Assembly (NCBI GenBank): GCA_016748015.1
Contig: JAAOMT010000011.1
Coordinates: 62,001-126,000 of the forward strand
Source of the DNA: Geosiphon pyriformis uo1
Taxonomy: Eukaryota; Fungi; Glomeromycota
DNA length: 64,000 nt
Direction of reading: 5' to 3'
Position 1 is the stretch's first letter. Each line of letters opens with the position of its first letter. Made by a program: the position numbers and the translations under genes. Below are positions 27,830-48,200 of this stretch, one piece after another. The notes beneath the pieces were generated by a model. That model saw only the letters and a program-made list of their open reading frames with translations. It searched no databases and was not told the origin of the DNA.

Positions 27830-29280
27830 AAATTTCAAGAAAAAATTTATACAAATAAAATTTTAATTATGATTTTAAAATTTATTATATTAATTTAAAT
27901 TGAAATTATCGACAATTGACTAACAATAAATGTATATAATATTGTTAATATATAGAGTGTTGTTTTAAAGAAATTCTTTAAAAAAAATTATTAAATTATT
28001 ATTTCAAAATAATAAAATGAAATTAATTTAATAGGAAATATAAATTTTTTACTAAATTAAATAAATATTAAATAATTTTAAATTGTTTAATATTTTATTT
28101 TTATTTATTTTAAAATTATTAATAATTTTTTATTTTTTATTTTTTATTTTTTGCTTAAACAAACAAATTAAATTTTTTAGCATATTATTTAATAATAGTT
28201 TTATTAAAATTTTAATTTATTTGATTATTTGATTTTTTTTATTAATATAATTAAATGTTTTAAAAAAAATAGTTTAATAATAATTTTAAAAACATTTTTT
28301 AATCTTTCTATAATAATTAATAAAAATTTAAATTAAATATATATATTTAAAAAAAAATATAGCTTTTATAAAAAAAACACAAAAATTTATTTTGAAATTT
28401 ACTTATCAAAACTTTTAAAAAGCAAGCTTTATAAAAAATATATATAATATTTACTTTTATTAACATTTTTTTAAATATAATAATATAATAAAAACTTTCA
28501 ACAATATTTTAATAAACTAAATAATAAATACATCTTAATATATAAATAATTTTATATTGAAAAAAACACTTAAATAAAAAAAAATTACAACTCAAAATAA
28601 TAAATTTTTATTTCAAAATTATATAAATACAAATACATAAAAAAATAGCTTTATATTATCAATTTAACATATATTATTATTTTATAATTTACCAAAATAA
28701 TTTATTTTAGGTTTGAAAAATAGTTTTACTTACAAATAATAATTTAAACAACTTTACTTTAAATTTTTTATATTTAATGTAAAGTAACTATAAAAAATTA
28801 AAAATAAAATCAGCTTTAAAAATATTAAAAACACAAAGAAAAATTTTTAGTAACAATGCTATTTATGAAAAAGAAATAGCATTTTTTTTGAATCTATTTT
28901 AATTGAATTAATTAAAATTAATAAAACAATTTTATAAAATAATATTTATAATAATATTATACTAATTTTTTAATAAAATCATATGCTTTTGAGCTTTCTA
29001 ATAATATCTTTTTTATATAATTTGGTACATTAGTTAAAATGTAATAATTATTTTCTAAATCCAGTTTTTTTTGTTCTATTGTGTATTTAGTTTCATGTAA
29101 ATAGGTAACAGTTAACCAATATTTTAATCAAAAAAATAATTTTAAGCTTTATTTAACAGATTGAATACTTTTAAAAAATAAAAAATAAAAGTTTTATTCT
29201 TATTATTTAAAGATGTTTATATGTACGTATAAAATAGGGTAAAAATAACTTGTTATTTGTCATGTATTTTTTATAACAAA
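27830..29280. other. AT-rich block, probably eroded repeat
   Basis: Very low C/G, no ORFs, between convergent genes. Boundaries approximate. Confidence 0.5.
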
Positions 29281-29283
29281 TGC

Positions 29284-29636
29284 CGTATATGACCGAAAAT
29301 AGGTAACCCTCGAAAATAAGAAACTTTTATTTGTAGAAAAAATTTATAAAATAATAATAAGTATGAAAATAAGAAACCTTTAATTTTTTTTAAAAATTTA
29401 TTAATACTCAAAATAATATCTTAATATACTATTTTTCTTATTATATTCAATATTTAATTTTACTATATCTATATTTTAATTATTACTTTTTAATTCGTTA
29501 AAATGAATCTGAAATATAGAAAAGGTAAATAAGAGAATTTTTTTCCTGTATTACTATATAGGCAAAAAGATTCGAAAATAAGAAATTTTCCATTTTAGAA
29601 TCACAAAGATAGGTTTCTTATTTTTGGTCATATACG
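29284..29636. mobile_element. Non-autonomous DNA transposon/MITE, ~350 bp, Tc1/pogo-like TIRs
   Basis: Left CGTATATGACCGAAAATAGGTAACC; right end reverse complement CGTATATGACCAAAAATAAGAAACC; internal GAAAATAAGAAA repeats at ~29312, ~29365, ~29574. No clean TA TSD. Confidence 0.75.
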
Positions 29637-32432: not shown

Positions 32433-34048
<1,616 letters not shown>

Positions 34049-34344
34049 TATATTGGATTCCGTTGAAAGAATAATGGATTGGAAAATGACGAATGTGAAT
34101 ATGACTTATAAGAACTTGACAGTCAGTTTTTATACTGGTAGGATAAGAAAAGTTTATTATAGATTTGTAGTACAGGAGTTAGACAAGAAAAAAAAATCGG
34201 GTGAGTGTCTAAACTTGGGGTGCGCGCATGTCAAATTATCGTAATTGTGTCGTAAATTATTGTTTTGAAACTTGTTTGATGGCCACCGATGAAAATAACG
34301 CCTATCAATAAAAATACTATCAGGTGCTTAGTAATGCTTATTAT

Positions 34345-34625
34345 TTCCACCACCTCTACGCCCGTATCTTTAATGCAAAGCAAAAAGAGGACCTCGAGCG
34401 ACAAAAACAACTCCGCCCGATTTCCAACGTACGAACTTCTCAGCGATATCGGGTCAGATATCGGAAATTGTGGTTACCCACCGTGATAGACTTTGTAGAT
34501 TTGTCTTCGACCTACATTCTGAAAGATTCGTGGTTCTCTTGGACGATGCGACCTCCGACAAGCATGAACTCAGAAGGCATTCATTTTTGGCGCATGCAGG
34601 GAAGGAGAGCTGCCTGCCATTAATG
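34345..34625 (+). pseudogene. tnpA: IS607-family TnpA serine recombinase remnant
   Basis: YARIFNAKQKEDLERQ (cf. YARVSSxxQxxDLxRQ), FPTYELLSDIGS and IVVTHRDRLCRFVFDL in successive frames. Confidence 0.8.
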
Positions 34626-34699
34626 AGAGCGTCAGAACAGGCGAAAAGCGCAAGGGAAAAGCGATAGCAGCTCGTTGCAAACGTCAGAAGTTGGAAGAT

Positions 34700-36255
34700 A
34701 CTCTCAACCGTACACTATTAATCAAGATGTATCCGAACCATCCTCAAAAGTGGTTCTTGAAACTTGACGAGATTTGCTCACAATACTGTTGTCGACATTG
34801 CCGTTTCTATACCAAAAATCTCATAGCAATAAATCACAACAGGCTTGGATAAAGCCTCAATCCATCAAAGATAAACTAAGGTTTACACAAATGTCCGGGC
34901 AGGAGAAGACCCTAATGAACACGAAGACAGGAAACTCCAAAAAGCTGCAATATGGGCGAGTGCAACTTCATGTGAACTGTTGTGTGTCTCGGAATGTTAC
35001 TTCGGAATATGCACAGCAAAGCGCCCGCGAATATTGTCAATAAGGCAATTGATGGAGCATGGAATAAGTAATTGGGCACAATTTAAATCAGCAAATTTAA
35101 ACATGAATTAAGAAGGTACAAACGCGAATCGGCAAGGTCTATCACCACGCTCTATCATTTCGATCTCGAAAAGATCTGTGAAATTCACATGGAACCGACT
35201 CATCTTCATAATCCGTCAATGCTGCTATTTGCACTCCAATCATTCCAAATTAATTTTTATTTGGTTTAAAAACTTTGCAAACATAATAAATAATATCATT
35301 GATTTGTAAGTCTTTTTATTTAACAAGTTTACAAATTCAGAATTGAAGATTGTATTAATTTAAATATATTCGAAAAAAGATAAAAGTTCTTTTACAATGT
35401 TTGAAATTTTCTCTTCAAATTTTTTCAAGTTTTATTGTGAATAAGTTTTTGGGGTAATATATTCTGGTAATTATGACCAATGAAATTTAATATGAATTCT
35501 TGATATATTTTTTCAACTTTTGATGTAAAAATAACACGCTGCTATAAATCTAACACCTTTCTGTATAATGACAAGTGTGCTTTGTGGCCTCTTCGTTTCG
35601 AGAAAAAGAGGCATAATAATAGGTGGCCCGTTCCTCACAAGATAATTTTGGATGGCAAGCTCACCTACTATCACGAGACGCAAAATCCAAGCTGATGGCT
35701 TTGTTCATGCAGTTTCCATTCATCCCGACCTTTTACTCTCCCACGAAAGGATTGGCGAACTTCTATTGGACGTATAGTTCGTATTTGCAAGTACTTGGAT
35801 AATCTCATCTCCCAAAGGATAATTTAGTAGTATCCTCCTCAAAACTTAAGATTAAGATGGCCGGGTGACTCCATAAGACGATTTCTCGGATGCGGCGAAA
35901 AGTTATACATCTGGAAGGTGAAATTCACCGGAAATCAGTTAGATTCTTTACCCGCGAATTCGACGGAATTGTTAGACATGCTGAATCACAAAACAAGAAA
36001 TACTACACGAAAACTGACCGGAAAATGCTTTGTTGGGCGCATTATCGCTTCCGACAACGTCTAATCATCAAGGCCGAGGAATTAGGGGCCCGTGTTATTA
36101 TCCAGAACGAAGCTTATACACCCAAGACTTGTAGTCAATGTGACAACATCCAAAGAATTGGAGGACCCGCAGTATACAACTATTGTGGGATTGTGATAGA
36201 TAGAGGTGAATATGGCGATCCTCTGGGATTGCTTTGCCCTACAATGACCATGTAG
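34700..36255 (+). pseudogene. tnpB: TnpB/Fanzor2-type RuvC nuclease remnant
   Basis: IKMYPNHPQK and RFAHN (N-terminal), FRSRKD, VSIHP (RuvC-I DP position), TFYSP, RICKYLDNLIS, EIHRKSVRF, MLCWAHYRFRQRL, NEAYTPKTCSQC, CGIVIDR. Confidence 0.85.
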
Positions 36256-37228
36256 GAAATAAAAGGTGTTACATAACAATGTTAGTATTGACGTGTTACA
36301 CACGAAATGAAGTTGAATCATATGCAATTTGAATGAATCTTGCGTATTCTACAAGTTTTTTGGTTACTACCACTCATTATCTTCTTTTTTTACTGCTTCC
36401 CATTCTACCCAGTACCCATCACTTTCGTCTCCTAATACGTTGAACATGGAAAGGTTACTCGGTCATTCTATTAACCTCCCCCTCTTTTACGGGTCGTCAG
36501 TTGTCTGAAGGTATTAATCCGAATTTTACCGTACCTACGTGGCTCATACTCCTCTGGAAAACATATTTTATTTCCATTTCCTCAACGCCCACCGAGATAT
36601 TATTTAAGGCGTTCTCGCCGTTTGGGAGAATTTGGATTGCTCATAGACCCAAGTGGGAAATCACGTGATAACTGAATATTCCCCAGTGGAAGGGCAACTC
36701 TCGGCACCCAAGTAGTTCATCCAAAGTGTGATATTACTTCCATATTTTTTTTGTGATATGAAGTAACTGGAATCAGGTTTACTTCTGCTAATCAATGTTT
36801 AGGCTTTGGGAAATTTAACGGTTTGCAACTCTTACACAATATTCGTAATAGCTATTTATTAAGAAAATATTTAATAATTGGAGTTTCGACTTGCAGGAGA
36901 TTCCCAAATCCAGTTCACAATTTCAATATAGTTGTAAATTTTGGCACAAATTCATTCAAATAGTGTTACTTTCAAGACTTCCGTATTTTGACAACTCAAA
37001 TAAGAAAAAAATAATTGTCATATAATTCAAAAAAAACTGATATTTTATCTTTTAAAATCATTTAACATTAGTTGGAAAATAAAATTGTTAGATTTCATAA
37101 GGCTTTAAATAAACTTGTGATTATAGATCTTAAACAACCAATAAGCTGTTAGGATCTGATAATTTTTACTTTGCAACACGCTTTATATCAAAAGGGGTTA
37201 TCCTCCAACTTTTTATTTTTTATACAAG

Positions 37229-38840
37229 ATGGCACAACCAAAAGTCACTAAACTGTTATCTTCACATCCTTTGATGTCTCTTAAGGTTCTTTCTTTGGGT
37301 TATCTTAGAAATTATGCCCATCTCACTCCACATTTACCTCGTTTAAACTTGGCATTCTTGCATTCCAAAACCCATCGAGGTTATTCTGTTATGCTTTTAA
37401 ACACAAAAAATTACCCCGGAAAAGTATCAACGGGTCAACAACAAGCCTCGAGTTCTCGTAAATATTCGAACCAACCCCTTATGAAACTAGATGATTTCGG
37501 GATAATAGGTGAGATTAAATGATAGACGAATCCAAGGATTCAAGTTTATCACAAATGCTTTACACTAGCCTGTTGGTTTATTGATAACACTAGCACTATA
37601 ATCATTCACTATTTCAATTATTGATTAATCTTTCAAAGCTTTGTAAACCCGAGGCAATATTTAATTTCCAATTCGATTCAAATATATCTCAAGATGCTTA
37701 CGCTCCGCCAACAAAAATGCCATCACCATTCACTCGGCTATTTTATTGGATTTTACATCAACGACATAAGAATTTTTGGAAGAACTGCTTCAAGTACACA
37801 AACTTCTCTTTTTTTATCCAAGTATCTAGTTATAAATAAGTATTCTCAATCTGAGTACATAAATTCTACAAGTGTCGGACTAATCAAGTGGTCAGAGAGA
37901 AAGGCGCTTAAATTTGAGAGAGGGGAACCTTGGAATGTTGGCCACTTCAAGAGCAAGGCTATCGATATGTACAAAGAGATGAATTCTTTATTTGCCGCGT
38001 AAGGGTCAACATTAGAATCGAACAAAGACAATTGAAGATTTTTTCAATTACTAATACAAATATTTGTGTTTCCTATCATAGAGGGAACCTTAAACCATTG
38101 CATAGGATTTGCCATGACCAAATGATATATGTTAGTATAATCAGTCTGTGCTGAATTTTTGGTTAAGGAGCAAAGGAATGCAATATTTTTTTCACCTGTT
38201 CTCCCGTATCTAGACAATGAAAAGCCAACTGAAGTCCCGGACCCCAGGTAAATATGCGTGGCAATTTCATGGTATGGTTGATAGACCAAAATGTGTGAAT
38301 ATAAGGGCAGTTCAGATTGCTATGTTACCCGATCACTGGTTGCAACAAATAACATTGAGAATTCATTCACGGCAGGTAAATAGAGCTTTTCAGTTTCACC
38401 ATTAATATTTCGTTACTTGATATTTATCTCATCTATGACCAATTTAGAGTCTAGCAGTGTACAACGATTCCGGAAAACTCATTGGTGGTGGACCAATGCG
38501 AATTTACAGAGTACTGGAACATGTTGTATTTCAACGTTGCCTTTGGGAAAATGAAGGATGGCTAATTTATGGTTACTATAATCCACCAATCGAATTATTT
38601 TCCAGCAAGGGAGTAGATGTTGGTCACACTGAATCTTCAACACTAACACCAAGCACCGCAACTACGGCCTACAAGAATTTCTCCAATGCCCCAAAAAAGG
38701 AGGCGACGATAGGGGCAGCGAAATCCTCAAAATTTGATGCAACGACTGCTCAGAAAAAGACTACATTTTCATCTGGTAACACCCCCCAAGAGGTTACAAC
38801 GAAAACAAAGCGGAATCTTCGCCATGTAAAGCCGAATTGA
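37229..38840 (+). CDS. Mitochondrial Tim44-domain protein (Mba1/mL45-like), multi-exon
   Basis: Basic/hydroxylated presequence-like N-terminus; AIDMYKEMNSLFA, WQFHG, QITLRIHSRQ, VLEHVVFQR..W...WLIYG. Confidence 0.72.
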
Positions 38841-45253: not shown

Positions 45254-48200
45254 CTATACACTTATATGCACAGAAACCGAATCTCCAATACCTGAAAAAA
45301 ATGGACAAAATTTACAAAACCCAAAACCACCCCCAGCAATCTGACCACACCAGCTGAAAGCACCTTAAGCAAACCAGAAACCGAAGCAAGAATAGAGCCA
45401 TCACTTGGAATCAAACCATGCTTCTCCATAAACACTCAGTGTTTGGCCCGGACCAACCAAACATCATCCCAAAATGCTAAACAAAACTCACACACAAAGC
45501 TCACAATCCTTTTAGCACCCTCCTTAGAATCTTTAAAGACTGAGATAGACTTACAAAACCATTCATCGAAAACAAAACCCTTACACAGAGCAACACTAAC
45601 TCCAACCTCAGAAACACAAGAAGCTAAGGCCTGTAAGACACATGAAGAAAAGCGAGAAAGGCCAGAAAGAGCCTCCCAAGTTGAAGCATGTGCGCCCAAC
45701 AAACGAGCACGGCCAACGGCATCCTGAGGACACGAAAAGACATGATCCGAGGTCTCAACATTACCACAAAACAGACAGACCACACTGGGGTAACTCCTGT
45801 CATATAAACGCTTGTACACAGCAACAGGAAGCCGATGATGGAGAGCCTTCATAAAGTAAGTACGACATCCCGCCATGCACATGCTAGTAAAACCGGATGC
45901 CAAGTGAGAATTGGGGTGCCACACCATAGAAGACATAGACCAATTGACATCAGCACGCAAACTATCATCCATAACACGAGAACCCACTCCAATCTCCCAA
46001 CAAGCTTGGTAAAATGACTGGAAAACATCACAAACAAAGTGTCTAGAGTTACCAGAAACCACCGTGCCACCAGCACATAGAAAACGTTCACTGACTAAAT
46101 GAGGTAGGCGCCAAGCAGAGCGAGCAGCACCCTTGGCAAGTGCATCAGCATGCTCGTTGCCTGAGACACCTAAATGACCTTTCACCTTAACCCAATTCAC
46201 ATCCAAATTCTTATGATGAATGACGGTGGCAATGTAATGACGCTCGATCCAACAGCGGTTCCTGAAATCCGGACGAACCAGTAAAGACTCCGACCTACAT
46301 GCATCTAAAGCAGCCTGGCTATCCGAGAACAAGTCAATCAAATGAGAAAAAGGAATACACTCAAGGGCCAAAGCTATGGCCTGCAGTTCCGTCAGAGTAG
46401 AAGAAACCAAACCAGACACCTCAACACCCAAACCCAAGTTAATGTCTTCAAAAAAAGCGGCAGCACCTGCTTTCATGTCAGCAGTGCTCAGACCAGAAAG
46501 AGACCCATCCATATACACAGAAAGGTGGGCAGCATCAATAGTTGGCAAAGTGTCACGAATCACACCAAAATTATGAGAAAAACAAATATCAGACACAGCT
46601 TAACCATCTACTAAAGAAGAACTTGAGGAGAGAGGAACAACACCACCAAGAAAGCGAACGGAAAGATCAAACCAGAAAGGAACTGGGCCACGAGGGTTTA
46701 GCCTCTTCCAGCGTTTGAAGGTACCCCAACTGAAAACATCACCATTATGGTCACGAAGCTGTTCCACAAAAGCAATTCCATAACACCTGAATGAAGGGAT
46801 GCACTTGAAAAAACAGGATTCACCAAGAACCAAAGACATAGGAGTACCACACCGACGACGAAAAGCACAATCCAGAGGGCCTCCCAAAGACAAATTACAC
46901 CCAGAAAAAATGCGAACCACACCCGCCAAAAAATTATCCGAGAGACTGATACCAACACGAACTGGAAACAGCAAAAGATGACAAGGACGCCAGCTGAGAA
47001 CTTGGAGGTCATGAGACCTATGAGAAAACAAGCGACCCAAGACACCAGTAGAATTCACAAAAGCAACAACGGAGGCCGATTTACTCTCAGCCTGTATCTG
47101 TTTGAAAGTTTTTAAATTGTACAAAGAGGGGTGATAAAGTGCGTCACTGAGGAAATCACGTGGCAATCCAGACTTGGACTTTAAGACCTTGCGAACCAGA
47201 GCATCCCATTTACTACAAACACCAACAGAAACAAAACTGAACTGAGTCCTGTAGCTAATGATAGGGAAAAAAACTGCAGACACCAAATATGTACACTGTT
47301 TGTCCGAAATTGCCTTTCTTAAAACAAGATTCGCAAAGAACCGTACATCAGCCTGGGCCTTAGCCAAGCTGGGCTTCGAAAGACCCTCAGAAGACAAAAA
47401 AATACCCAAATAGCGATGAGATTCCCCTCTCTTGGCAATAGAAATAGGTGCACCACTAATAGTCAAATGAGGATTCAGCACCTGGCAATTGATGAGAATA
47501 GTCACCGTTTTGTTATTGTTGATAGAAATATTATTAAACCTAAAAAACTCGCTAGCAACATCAAGGATGCGTTGTGTAGCAGCCTGGCTGCTACCAACCC
47601 AGATAGTATCATCGACAAAAGCGCCAGCAGTAAGAAACGAAGACAGCCCAGCTCGAGAATCCACCCGGCCAGTCCTTGATATGAAATGAGAATTCAACCT
47701 ATAGCCATACACACTATCCTGTCTCTTGACCTCACACAAAAGCGAATCATAAAAAATACGCCAGAGAAGAGGCGAAAAAACTTCCCCTTGATCCAGCCCA
47801 TTGTGGACACAATACCCATCAGTCAAGCCAAAGTCGGTCATTACTTTGTTGACGTGACCATTGTGAATACTGCCAAAAAATCTAATAAACCTGTCACACA
47901 TTTTGATTCTGACCAGACTCCTCCTAAGATGTTCTCAACCAACCGAGTCATAAGCCTTGCGCATGTCCTGTAAAACCAGCCAAAGTTCATGGTTCTTTTC
48001 CAAGGCATCTTCAACCACAGAACCAATAGCAAAAATGGGAGATTGAGTCGTCGTACCCTTCAAAACCAAAAAATTGTTCTTATGAAGAACATCAAAAGTG
48101 CTGCAAGCCAGAGAGATCCTATCCGAAAAGATCTTGGAGAGAATCTTGCAGGCCATTTCAATTAAAGCTATAGGGCGGGTGTTCATGAGAACTCCCTCCC

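Follow-up and report, generated by a model that had tools for sequence, protein, structure and literature searches.

Positions 34289-36304 of the window (the whole stretch of 64,000 nucleotides that was analysed), on the + strand and between a PCT1-like and an Mba1-like gene, are very probably a dead copy of a eukaryotic IS607-type DNA transposon of Geosiphon pyriformis, encoding the recombinase TnpA and the nuclease Fanzor2. The homology, the element ends, the copy number, the decay, the support of the junctions and a spliced joint were all computed here, and the way in which the element would have worked is inferred from characterised IS607 and Fanzor2 systems. The element is an additional member of an already known kind of transposon, that is, an ordinary fossil. 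A first-pass annotation had proposed an IS607-type TnpA and TnpB/Fanzor2 fossil in a fungal chromosome, and this proposal is now supported by Pfam, by tblastn, by genome searches and by structure comparison; moreover, all the motifs quoted at that time have been found on the + strand and in the order given.

Extent and coding remnants of the element

The whole element, from the left to the right end, was delimited by alignment with 20 other genomic copies (21 copies in all) and by end motifs. Beyond 34289 and 36304 the similarity to these copies is lost, and the 21 copies have common left and right ends and unrelated flanks; the span first suggested, 34290-36300, is close to these limits. No terminal inverted repeats were found at 34289/36304. 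The left-end region (34289-34346, +), recognised by copy alignment and an end-motif search, contains one copy of a subterminal motif of about 21 nt that is present in two copies in the family, with a related copy near the right end, and about 150 alignment columns are missing from the window copy at 34347. A CCG directly precedes the left end in several copies and the right-end terminus is also CCG, a candidate for the short G/C core of a recombinase crossover site but a signal blurred by decay. On the other side, the 3' non-coding tail (36256-36304, +) is conserved in the family alignment up to the terminus, and its short motifs CCATGCAGGAA and AATCCATCCG are also found in the divergent intact element L043. 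This tail is the predicted end of an omegaRNA scaffold as well as the putative TnpA-binding end. A search of 34000-36700 against Rfam with a permissive threshold gave no match. RNAalifold on 20 copies, applied to the last 250 or so columns (228 kept, the majority string covering the last part of the nuclease gene and some of the 3' tail), gave practically no consensus structure (-1.25 kcal/mol), and the folds of single sequences were unremarkable (z of -2.4 for the window copy and -1.3 for L043). Since copies that decay neutrally cannot show covariation, the fold result speaks neither for nor against a guide RNA.

By tblastn, intact TnpA matches 34452-34761 and the Fanzor2 relatives match 34462-36246, all on the + strand and in the order typical of IS607, with an overlap at 34589-34761 in different frames. 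The TnpA and nuclease motifs are distributed over three frames, which implies at least two frame changes in tnpA and at least six in the nuclease gene.

The tnpA remnant (34354-34761, +), defined by tblastn with intact TnpA and by motif positions, includes YARIF, SDIGS, VTHRDRLCRF and a basic C-terminus; it runs through three frames and has a deletion near 34460. In particular, YARIFNAKQKEDLERQ lies at 34357-34404, SDIGS at 34442-34456 and VTHRDRLCRF at 34473-34502. The catalytic-core motifs expected of TnpA (Y-A-R-V-S-S...Q; D-x-G-S-G-x-N; V-x-H-x-D-R-L-x-R-F) are present in order with the exception of the catalytic Ser, replaced by Phe in YARIF, which stands in the place of YARVS. Searches with the intact TnpA from L043 and L044 gave E-values of 3.7e-12 (a metagenomic IS607 TnpA, over 34452-34761) and 1e-5. 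The Pfam Resolvase profile remained below threshold on the piece 34374-34664 (E 0.11), and it passes its cut-off at only 3 places genome-wide (31.8-40.2 bits for these paralogues); therefore, intact relatives are the basis of the assignment to TnpA. An N-terminal MerR-type helix-turn-helix is not recognisable in the window copy, in which residues 1-48 of intact TnpA are unmatched; only 2 of the 109 genomic TnpA matches reach these residues, and the 5' region of the family is devoid of a readable helix-turn-helix.

The remnant of the Fanzor2 N-terminal domain, KLWLPTVIDF...DSWFSW, occupies 34462-34617 (+; tblastn with residues 97-134 of P0011 and 87-145 of P0155), with the motif stretch itself at 34465-34542 and motif columns that are invariant in 16 relatives. 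It is followed by the frameshifted N-terminal half of the protein (34589-35221, +; residues 155-307 of P0011), which holds a basic stretch resembling a nuclear localisation signal and then the HTH_OrfB/WED region, with KMYPNHPQK at 34724-34750, RFAHN at 34770-34784 and FRSRKD at 35158-35175. The C-terminal half (35534-36255, +), identified by Pfam PF07282 and tblastn, contains RICKYLDNLIS at 35780-35812, MLCWAHYRFRQRL at 36025-36063, NEAYTPKTCSQC at 36106-36141 and IDRG from 36196. Intact Fanzor2 relatives match 35707-36246 with E-values of 4e-25 to 2.7e-31, and PF07282 (Cas12f1-like TNB) matches an open piece of 128 aa at 35869-36252 (E 1.1e-10, 41.9 bits, cut-off 26.3), a site that also came up in a whole-genome PF07282 scan. 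The broken pieces were searched separately and as they stand, with no joining, full-length consensus or frame repair; among the stop-free ones only the C-terminal piece passed any family, and Pfam HTH_OrfB_IS605 gave no match. Elsewhere in the window, a weak TnpB-like match at 45730-45807 was judged spurious; it lies in a long open reading frame with a C-terminal CxxC...H...C, taken to be a putative retrotransposon remnant.

Catalytic positions of the nuclease are lost as well. RuvC-I (35706-35729) reads HPD instead of DPG; given that DPG is present in the paralogue L002 (SIDPGIH) and invariant in all relatives, the motif has been lost from the window copy by mutation. The shifted Glu of RuvC-II is kept in NEAYTPKTCSQC, in which a Glu is followed by six residues and the first Cys, in agreement with the relocated catalytic Glu of Fanzor2, which lies six residues ahead of the zinc finger (PMC13565253). 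Of the two zinc-finger pairs, the first CxxC is preserved and the other has been removed by a 6-nt deletion (36175-36189, YNYCG; copy alignment), and RuvC-III (36196-36216) has DRG in place of DRD. Together with the Ser to Phe change and several deletions, these lesions bear out the earlier view that this copy is dead, and it belongs to Fanzor2 by descent only, not as a working enzyme.

Furthermore, the nuclease gene is interrupted by a foreign, AT-rich insert of 312 bp (35222-35533), with a GC content down to 0.29, missing from the 20 other copies. It has 87-90% identity to two other places only (C366 and C635), which share flanks with each other, and on this ground its interpretation as a MITE was rejected; it appears to be part of a longer sequence present in few copies.

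Copy number, decay and transcription

More than 100 decayed copies of the family are present in the genome. With the E-value limits applied, the census of the 128-Mb assembly returned 118 PF07282, 109 TnpA and 96 TnpB matches, the TnpB searches having scored the best 92 of 367 (protein) and 86 of 529 (profile) first-look candidates; a DNA search found over 40 places with 64-78% identity to the window element. In the alignment of 21 copies the median pairwise identity is 0.78 and each copy differs from the majority base of each column at 10-26% of positions (13% for the window copy, a divergence like that of the others). Transitions outnumber transversions by a factor of 1.9, with 45% of the changes being C>T or G>A; a strict RIP context was not seen, C>T being raised in every context with a mild CpG excess.

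The expectation of the first-pass annotation that intact paralogues of this genome might provide candidate nucleases is not supported: among the best-scoring matches to the Pfam family, the TnpA protein, the Fanzor2 protein and a profile of 69 sequences there is no full-length stop-free paralogue, and every high-scoring fragment in the profile, protein and DNA searches (hundreds of fragments) is partial or contains stops, with the proviso that a census scoring only the best candidates could have missed an undamaged copy. The ORF listing did not bear out an 'open frame 439 aa' reported at C699. Intact relatives were found in metagenomic contigs and, as annotated proteins that may be intact, in Diversispora epigaea.

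IS607 and TnpB are chiefly elements of prokaryotes or giant viruses, and the segment, as already observed in the first-pass annotation, has no introns, unlike its neighbours; both features would be expected of bacterial or viral contamination, or of a chimeric assembly joint, lying outside the fungal chromosome. This origin is nonetheless extremely improbable. In fact, the related remnants, more than 100, lie on numerous large contigs of this assembly, the GC content is similar to that of the adjoining genes and the pattern of decay fits a long genomic residence. Moreover, the left junction is bridged by contigs of the public runs X1 (33616-34723) and X2 (34204-34532) and the right junction by a contig of X1 (36078-37200), in all cases with zero mismatches, and the element is present in the run X3, from a second study, where it differs at 4 single bases. 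The chromosomal location originally claimed, as opposed to a chimeric contaminant, is thereby upheld.

The element is still transcribed and spliced, within a non-coding or mis-annotated transcript corresponding to the gene model KAG9307024.1, an exactly matching annotated protein by which the organism is identified. A GT..AG intron (36281-36412, +), defined by spliced contigs, connects the 3' half of the fossil with the flank; the joint 36280^36413 occurs in contigs of X2 and X3 (two studies) and is absent from the DNA run X1, and the spliced transcript ends near 36904. The existence of a gene model of 165 aa and of RNA-derived contigs from two studies, covering the 3' half and spliced from the element into the flank, could be taken to indicate a domesticated locus in which either the protein or the transcript has a host function. 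This is very unlikely, however, because KAG9307024.1 fuses two out-of-context fragments, the open piece has no RuvC-I Asp, half a zinc finger and no RuvC-III Asp, and a representative search gave no close protein match besides KAG9307024.1 itself (98% identical). In addition, the divergence of the window copy, being like that of the other copies, gives no sign of constraint. KAG9307024.1 is better regarded as a pseudogene fragment, and its recognition as such aids the annotation of the repeat-rich genomes of Glomeromycotina.

As for the dead transposon itself, its mode of action may be sketched by analogy with the characterised systems. In the active element, the serine recombinase TnpA would have excised and inserted double-stranded DNA, with no need of inverted repeats and no duplication of the target, and the Fanzor2 nuclease would have used as its guide an RNA encoded at the 3' end of the element; like IS607 TnpB, Fanzor2 may have cut the empty donor site, with repair restoring the element. 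In the Geosiphon lineage the family grew beyond 100 copies and then decayed neutrally, mainly through C>T and G>A changes. The window copy has lost the TnpA Ser, the RuvC-I Asp, half of the zinc finger and the RuvC-III Asp, gaining frameshifts, deletions and the 312-bp insert, and can neither move nor cut. The fossil mainly records a past expansion, to more than 100 copies, of a recombinase-bearing IS607/Fanzor2 family in the deepest-branching arbuscular-mycorrhiza-related fungus; it bears on the history of fungal RNA-guided nucleases, and the Geosiphon genome seems to offer no ready-made compact nuclease.

Overlap of tnpA and the Fanzor2 N-terminal domain

A lead that matters more than the fossil itself came from the relative position of the two genes. 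VTHRDRLCRF had been correctly taken as a recombinase motif, but the nuclease gene does not simply come after that of the recombinase, as had been assumed: the same stretch of DNA, read one frame over, gives the conserved Fanzor2 motif KLWLPTVIDF, so that tnpA and the Fanzor2 gene overlap rather than succeed one another. The window fossil retains both readings. Of 38 non-redundant intact elements, 35 keep the Fanzor2 frame open through tnpA, and the open stretch matches the Fanzor2-specific N-terminal domain. It is likely that the domain setting Fanzor2 apart from ordinary TnpB is encoded within tnpA, in the +1 frame, and that this arrangement is ancient, being shared by a cyanobacterial IS607, giant viruses and the Glomeromycotina clade; in Fanzor2 genes that lost tnpA, the overprinted stretch would survive as an ordinary N-terminal domain. 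Accordingly, the same DNA would specify both the conserved core of a serine recombinase and a structured part of a nuclease.

The solved structure closest to an intact relative is the mimivirus Fanzor2 9b0l, aligned with residues 12-521 of the P0106 model (Z 24.2). In the mimivirus structure, the N-terminal domain completes the RuvC fold and contacts the guide RNA. The N-terminal region of the P0106 model aligns to 9b0l from residue 53, and TnpB/Cas12 structures align only from about residue 122 of the model; a sequence-only alignment of the N-terminal motif to the mimivirus Fanzor2 failed, and the link is by structure comparison only.

A Fanzor2-specific N-terminal domain has been described (PMC11832414), and it has been reported that IS607 orfA and orfB 'often overlap' (PMC6188088); in the literature searched, no account was found of the extent of this overlap, of its conservation, or of its identity with the Fanzor2 N-terminal domain. 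If the dual coding is real, the domain arose by overprinting on tnpA, the evolution of transposase and nuclease is tied to the same nucleotides, and bacterial 'pro-Fanzor' TnpBs may, as annotated, lack part of their N-terminus. From a practical point of view, a rule would follow for picking full-length Fanzor2/TnpB open frames for genome-editing tests.

Relatives and known systems

The closest named relatives belong to other Glomeromycotina (Diversispora, Cetraspora and Gigaspora) and cluster with the Geosiphon copies in a tree of the C-terminal region. In this tree, which follows up the phylogeny of the RuvC region suggested earlier, the Geosiphon copies fall with Glomeromycotina and soil sequences and not with viruses, the Glomeromycotina sequences forming a group of their own, apart from NCLDV, with support 95/66. 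The separation bears on whether the copies could be pieces of integrated giant-virus (NCLDV) DNA carrying IS607, rather than products of transposition within the fungal genome. Giant viruses are enriched in Fanzor2/IS607 (PMC10530073), relatives were found on eighty giant-virus contigs, and one solo relative lies inside an NCLDV-like insert. Nevertheless, beside the tree, the identical left and right end points of 21 copies with unrelated flanks and the ordinary intron-bearing fungal genes flanking the element in the window make a viral origin of the copies very improbable, and transposition within the fungal genome is the preferred reading.

The giant-virus elements ISvMimi, ISvAR158_1 and ISvNY2A_1 (structure 9B0L) have, as here, a serine recombinase followed by Fanzor2, and giant-virus IS607 Fanzor2 elements likewise have neither inverted repeats nor target duplications; chlorovirus-sized contigs are among the relatives found. 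The relatives share with giant-virus Fanzor2 the DPG of RuvC-I, the N-terminal domain and a Glu placed six residues ahead of the zinc finger. Unlike these elements, the Geosiphon one resides in a fungal chromosome and is both high-copy and completely decayed; its protein identity to the viral proteins is only about 25-44%.

The same architecture is seen in the bacterial IS607 with a 'pro-Fanzor' TnpB, such as that of Moorena producens or, in the literature, ISXfa1; Fanzor2 has been described as arising from this clade (bioRxiv 10.1101/2023.08.09.552727). The TnpB frame of Moorena is also open through tnpA, with 547 codons versus the 394 annotated, and encodes PYW...LLLP...SWF. These sequences have a prokaryotic host, however, and in the C-terminal alignment they fall outside the Glomeromycotina group, together with part of the viral sequences.

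Among fungi, the 'transposase' proteins Glove_688g24, Glove_55g58 and Glove_40g20 of Diversispora epigaea and those of Cetraspora pellucida and Gigaspora rosea belong to the same Fanzor2 clade, and Glove_688g24 (P0166) shares the N-terminal motif (YWND...LWLPT...SWF), the basic stretch, EAYTSK-CxxC and CxxC...DRD. These predicted proteins are long and may be intact, whereas every Geosiphon copy examined is broken. Ascomycete yeasts (Ashbya, Eremothecium, S. cerevisiae EC1118 and Torulaspora) have single-copy Fanzor2 genes (Bao and Jurka 2013, PMC3627910), with one family per genome, and are absent from the list of serine-recombinase-bearing elements in the same paper. Both the yeast and the Geosiphon Fanzor2 genes are fungal; the Geosiphon family is recombinase-bearing, exceeds 100 copies and resides in an early-diverging fungus.

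The decayed element and its place in the chromosome

The segment 34290-36300 (+ strand) had been read in the first-pass annotation as the fossil of an IS607-type element, pairing a serine recombinase (TnpA) with a TnpB/Fanzor2 nuclease, and this reading proved real and rightly interpreted. In a three-frame translation of 34200-36400 all the motifs it listed were found on the + strand, in IS607 order and spread over three frames. The longest open piece of the element (35869-36252, 128 aa) is matched by the Cas12f1-like TNB domain of Pfam (PF07282; E 1.1e-10, 41.9 bits, cut-off 26.3), and the match of the Pfam Resolvase profile to the piece with VTHRDRLCRF is sub-threshold (E 0.11). The recombinase identity is settled by intact relatives: the intact IS607 TnpA of metagenomic contig L043 matches 34452-34571 and 34579-34761 (E 3.7e-12), and matches to intact Fanzor2 relatives cover 34462-35059 and 35579-36246 (E down to 2.7e-31). 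The lesions that had been claimed are all present too: YARVS has become YARIF in tnpA, DPG of RuvC-I reads HPD, DRD reads DRG, and the second zinc-finger pair has been removed by a 6-nt deletion. About 150 alignment columns are absent at 34347, with another deletion near 34460. Frame changes number at least two in tnpA and at least six in the nuclease gene. The fossil is a dead member of an already known kind.

The element is flanked on one side by a PCT1-like gene (minus strand, start near 34048) and on the other by a Mba1-like gene (+ strand, start near 37229). A chimeric bacterial contaminant, the alternative raised in the first-pass annotation, was not seen when contigs of public runs were aligned to 33400-37200. 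In the DNA run (X1), contigs cross both junctions with zero mismatches, the left one at 33616-34723 and the right one at 36078-37200; a further run (X2) bridges the left junction (34204-34532), and in a run from a second study (X3) the element is present with four single-base differences. Contamination and a chimeric joint can, in practice, be excluded. X2 and X3 carry two spliced joints lacking in X1, one at a PCT1 intron (CT..AC) and one, of GT..AG type, at 36280^36413, and for this reason both were taken as RNA-derived. The 3' half of the fossil (approximately 35612-36280) belongs to a + strand transcript that is spliced from within the element to the flank and ends near 36904, short of the Mba1-like gene. 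The GT..AG intron (36281-36412), found in two runs from two studies, has its donor in the 3' tail of the element and its acceptor side in the host flank; the fossil therefore supplies an exon and a splice donor. A search of a representative library returned a 165-aa protein 98% identical to the open piece, which exact look-up identifies as the hypothetical protein KAG9307024.1 of Geosiphon pyriformis. Its gene model joins two fossil fragments by splicing; a pseudogene annotated in error is the best reading of it.

Two other features of the surroundings were recorded. About 5 kb upstream of the element, 28000-29500 is extremely AT-rich (GC 7-16% in 500-nt windows). Downstream, 45436-46596 on the minus strand holds an open frame of 386 aa whose C-terminal CxxC...H...C stretch and other features resemble, by eye, the RNase H-like/zinc-binding end of a non-LTR retrotransposon; a weak TnpB zinc-finger match in this frame is spurious.

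The family in the Geosiphon genome

Searches of the 128-Mb, 792-contig assembly, in which the window contig is C456, gave matches on many contigs with every query: 118 with PF07282, 109 with the intact TnpA of L043, 96 with the Fanzor2 relative P0006 (92 of 367 first-look candidates scored), and 127 matched pieces with the element DNA (64-78% identity, more than 40 places). When the window copy was aligned with 20 further genomic copies, the similarity ran from 34289 to 36304 and the flanks were unrelated. The ends are IS607-like: no terminal inverted repeats were found there, and two copies of a motif of about 21 nt lie close to the left end and a single one close to the right. CCG stands just ahead of the left end in several copies and also forms the right terminus, an IS607-like trait that decay blurs. 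The median pairwise identity among copies is 0.78, and the distance from the per-column majority is 10-15%, with a maximum of 26% (13% for the window copy). Transitions exceed transversions 1.9:1. C>T and G>A together account for 45% of the changes and are seen in all sequence contexts, with a mild CpG excess.

Intact paralogues, which the first-pass annotation had proposed as candidate programmable nucleases, find no support in this genome, because no match of any own-genome search is both full-length and stop-free; with a 69-sequence profile (86 of 529 first-look candidates scored), at most about 240 of 501 positions were covered per match. The family is large and, as far as the scored matches show, dead, and nothing in this genome points to a usable nuclease. 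Another TnpB/Fanzor subfamily, distinct from this one (L001/L132, G000:C701:384105-387644; L003/L133), has the top TNB-domain scores (72.9 bits); it differs in its N-terminal region and is stop-interrupted too.

The window copy also contains a 312-bp AT-rich stretch (35222-35533) missing from all other aligned copies. It could be read as a MITE, a reading rejected on the grounds that 87-90% identity was found to only two other genomic places, on C366 and C635, which have flanks in common with each other; the insert is a fragment captured from another sequence of low copy number. It was recorded at window 35222-35533, L020 (about 1500-1812) and L050; on its minus strand starts an open frame (MIGVQIA...) that is carried on in C366.

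Overlapping frames of tnpA and Fanzor2

The full-length relatives P0011, P0155 and P0012 (637-648 aa) carry about 190 residues ahead of the canonical TnpB start. In one frame of their DNA (L042, L043 and L044) lies an intact IS607 TnpA with helix-turn-helix, YARVSS, DxGSGxN and VVTHRDRLxRF, and in the +1 frame the Fanzor2 open frame begins 43-124 nt after the tnpA ATG. The window fossil has the same two frames over one stretch, VTHRDRLCRF at 34473-34502 and KLWLPTVIDF at 34465-34494. The loci compared for this layout are L042-L044, L047, L051-L131 and window 34465-34502. It is likely that tnpA carries the N-terminal domain of Fanzor2 in its +1 frame, and five lines of evidence argue that this second frame is real.

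When synonymous tnpA codons were permuted in the three elements, the +1 frame was stop-free in 0.3%, 1.6% and 4.7% of trials. A 16-sequence alignment, used to scan IMG/VR, matched at 80 giant-virus loci. A same-strand tnpA is present at 49 of them; at 44 of the 49 the stop-free Fanzor2 frame overlaps the tnpA frame by at least 150 nt (usually 420-720 nt), and wherever there was any overlap it lay at +1 (45/45). Among 38 non-redundant intact tnpA genes, 35 have no stop in the +1 frame from the catalytic Ser to the end, where synonymous permutation expects a median of 3.6; the +2 frame is stop-free in none (median 10 stops). For divergent pairs, +1-frame identity was above the TnpA-only prediction in five of six comparisons (z 2.4 to 8.4). 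The motif encoded in this frame, FW-x7-S-x2-LW-x-P ... WF, is invariant in 16 proteins 24-56% identical to one another, a conservation equal to that of the catalytic residues, and is retained in solo Fanzor2 genes whose -1 frame lacks any tnpA (L045/L046, in an NCLDV-like insert, and L048). A bacterial IS607, that of Moorena producens, is built alike: its TnpB frame stays open over 547 codons (394 annotated), extends at +1 through tnpA and has PYW...LLLP...SWF in its translation.

An AlphaFold model of the relative P0106, built on a 69-sequence alignment, has a mean pLDDT of 85 and is confident over the motif region (75-95 by block). Its residues 12-521 align to residues 53-518 of the mimivirus Fanzor2 structure 9b0l (Z 24.2, rmsd 3.5 Å, 412 residues), whereas every TnpB/Cas12 structure aligns only from residue ~122 on. 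Residues 12-121 of P0106 are encoded at nt 513-842 of L047, wholly within the tnpA frame (119-868). The published Fanzor2-specific N-terminal domain comprises residues 53-130; starting at 53, it includes the RuvC-R part and is in contact with both RuvC and guide RNA (PMC11832414).

Solo Fanzor2 P0052 (L045/L046, contigs of GCA_016307145.1) lies among densely packed short genes, including an Evr1/Alr sulfhydryl oxidase; the locus resembles a stretch of giant-virus DNA integrated in a eukaryotic genome whose assembly is very fragmented.

Relatives and known systems

With the intact relative P0155 as query against PDB sequences (phmmer), 9b0l, the ternary complex of the mimivirus Fanzor2 'TnpB-like protein L79', ranks first (E 6.8e-18). 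A homology search with P0006 led to proteins of Diversispora epigaea (680, 613 and 400 aa), Cetraspora pellucida and Gigaspora rosea as named relatives, with TnpBs of cyanobacteria (Moorena) and Chloroflexi next in line. In P0166 (Glove_688g24), the Diversispora protein of 680 aa, the N-terminal motif is retained together with the catalytic and zinc motifs; the 613-aa protein retains only the N-terminal motif. Within the P0166 model about 100 residues spanning the RuvC-I region occur twice in identical form, either through an assembly/annotation artefact or as a real tandem duplication. In a maximum-likelihood tree of about 170 C-terminal columns, three Geosiphon pieces, four Glomeromycotina proteins and six metagenomic proteins form one group (support 95/66), with bacterial and giant-virus sequences outside it; the window copy groups with two soil-metagenome proteins (97/92). 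The tree suggests a Glomeromycotina Fanzor2 clade, at which it hints rather than proving it, since it is unrooted and its rows are short and partly degenerate.

Homology of both genes, element ends, copy number, decay, junction support, the spliced joint and the overlap of frames are direct observations. By analogy with characterised systems, TnpA would cut and rejoin double-stranded DNA at a short G/C core, Fanzor2 would be guided to the vacated site by a 3' RNA, and translation of the N-terminal domain in vivo would start within tnpA. No guide-RNA structure emerged for this family from an Rfam search or from RNA folding.

IS607 orfs are known to 'often overlap' (PMC6188088). The tnpA overlap is not mentioned in the Fanzor2 structure paper, the pro-Fanzor paper or a 2026 review, and the novelty of the dual-coding reading is uncertain, literature coverage being partial. 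Fanzors have been surveyed across all GenBank eukaryotes (PMC10530073); our literature search found no paper linking Fanzor with Geosiphon or Glomeromycota. The fossil is chiefly of value for drawing attention to the Glomeromycotina Fanzor2 clade that the tree suggests and to the dual-coding layout of the intact relatives. The relocation of the Glu to six residues ahead of the zinc finger (PMC13565253) and IS607-type elements with Fanzor2, in eukaryotes as well as giant viruses (PMC3627910; PMC10530073; bioRxiv 10.1101/2023.08.09.552727), have been described; the kind is known, and the Geosiphon fossil is a new example of it.
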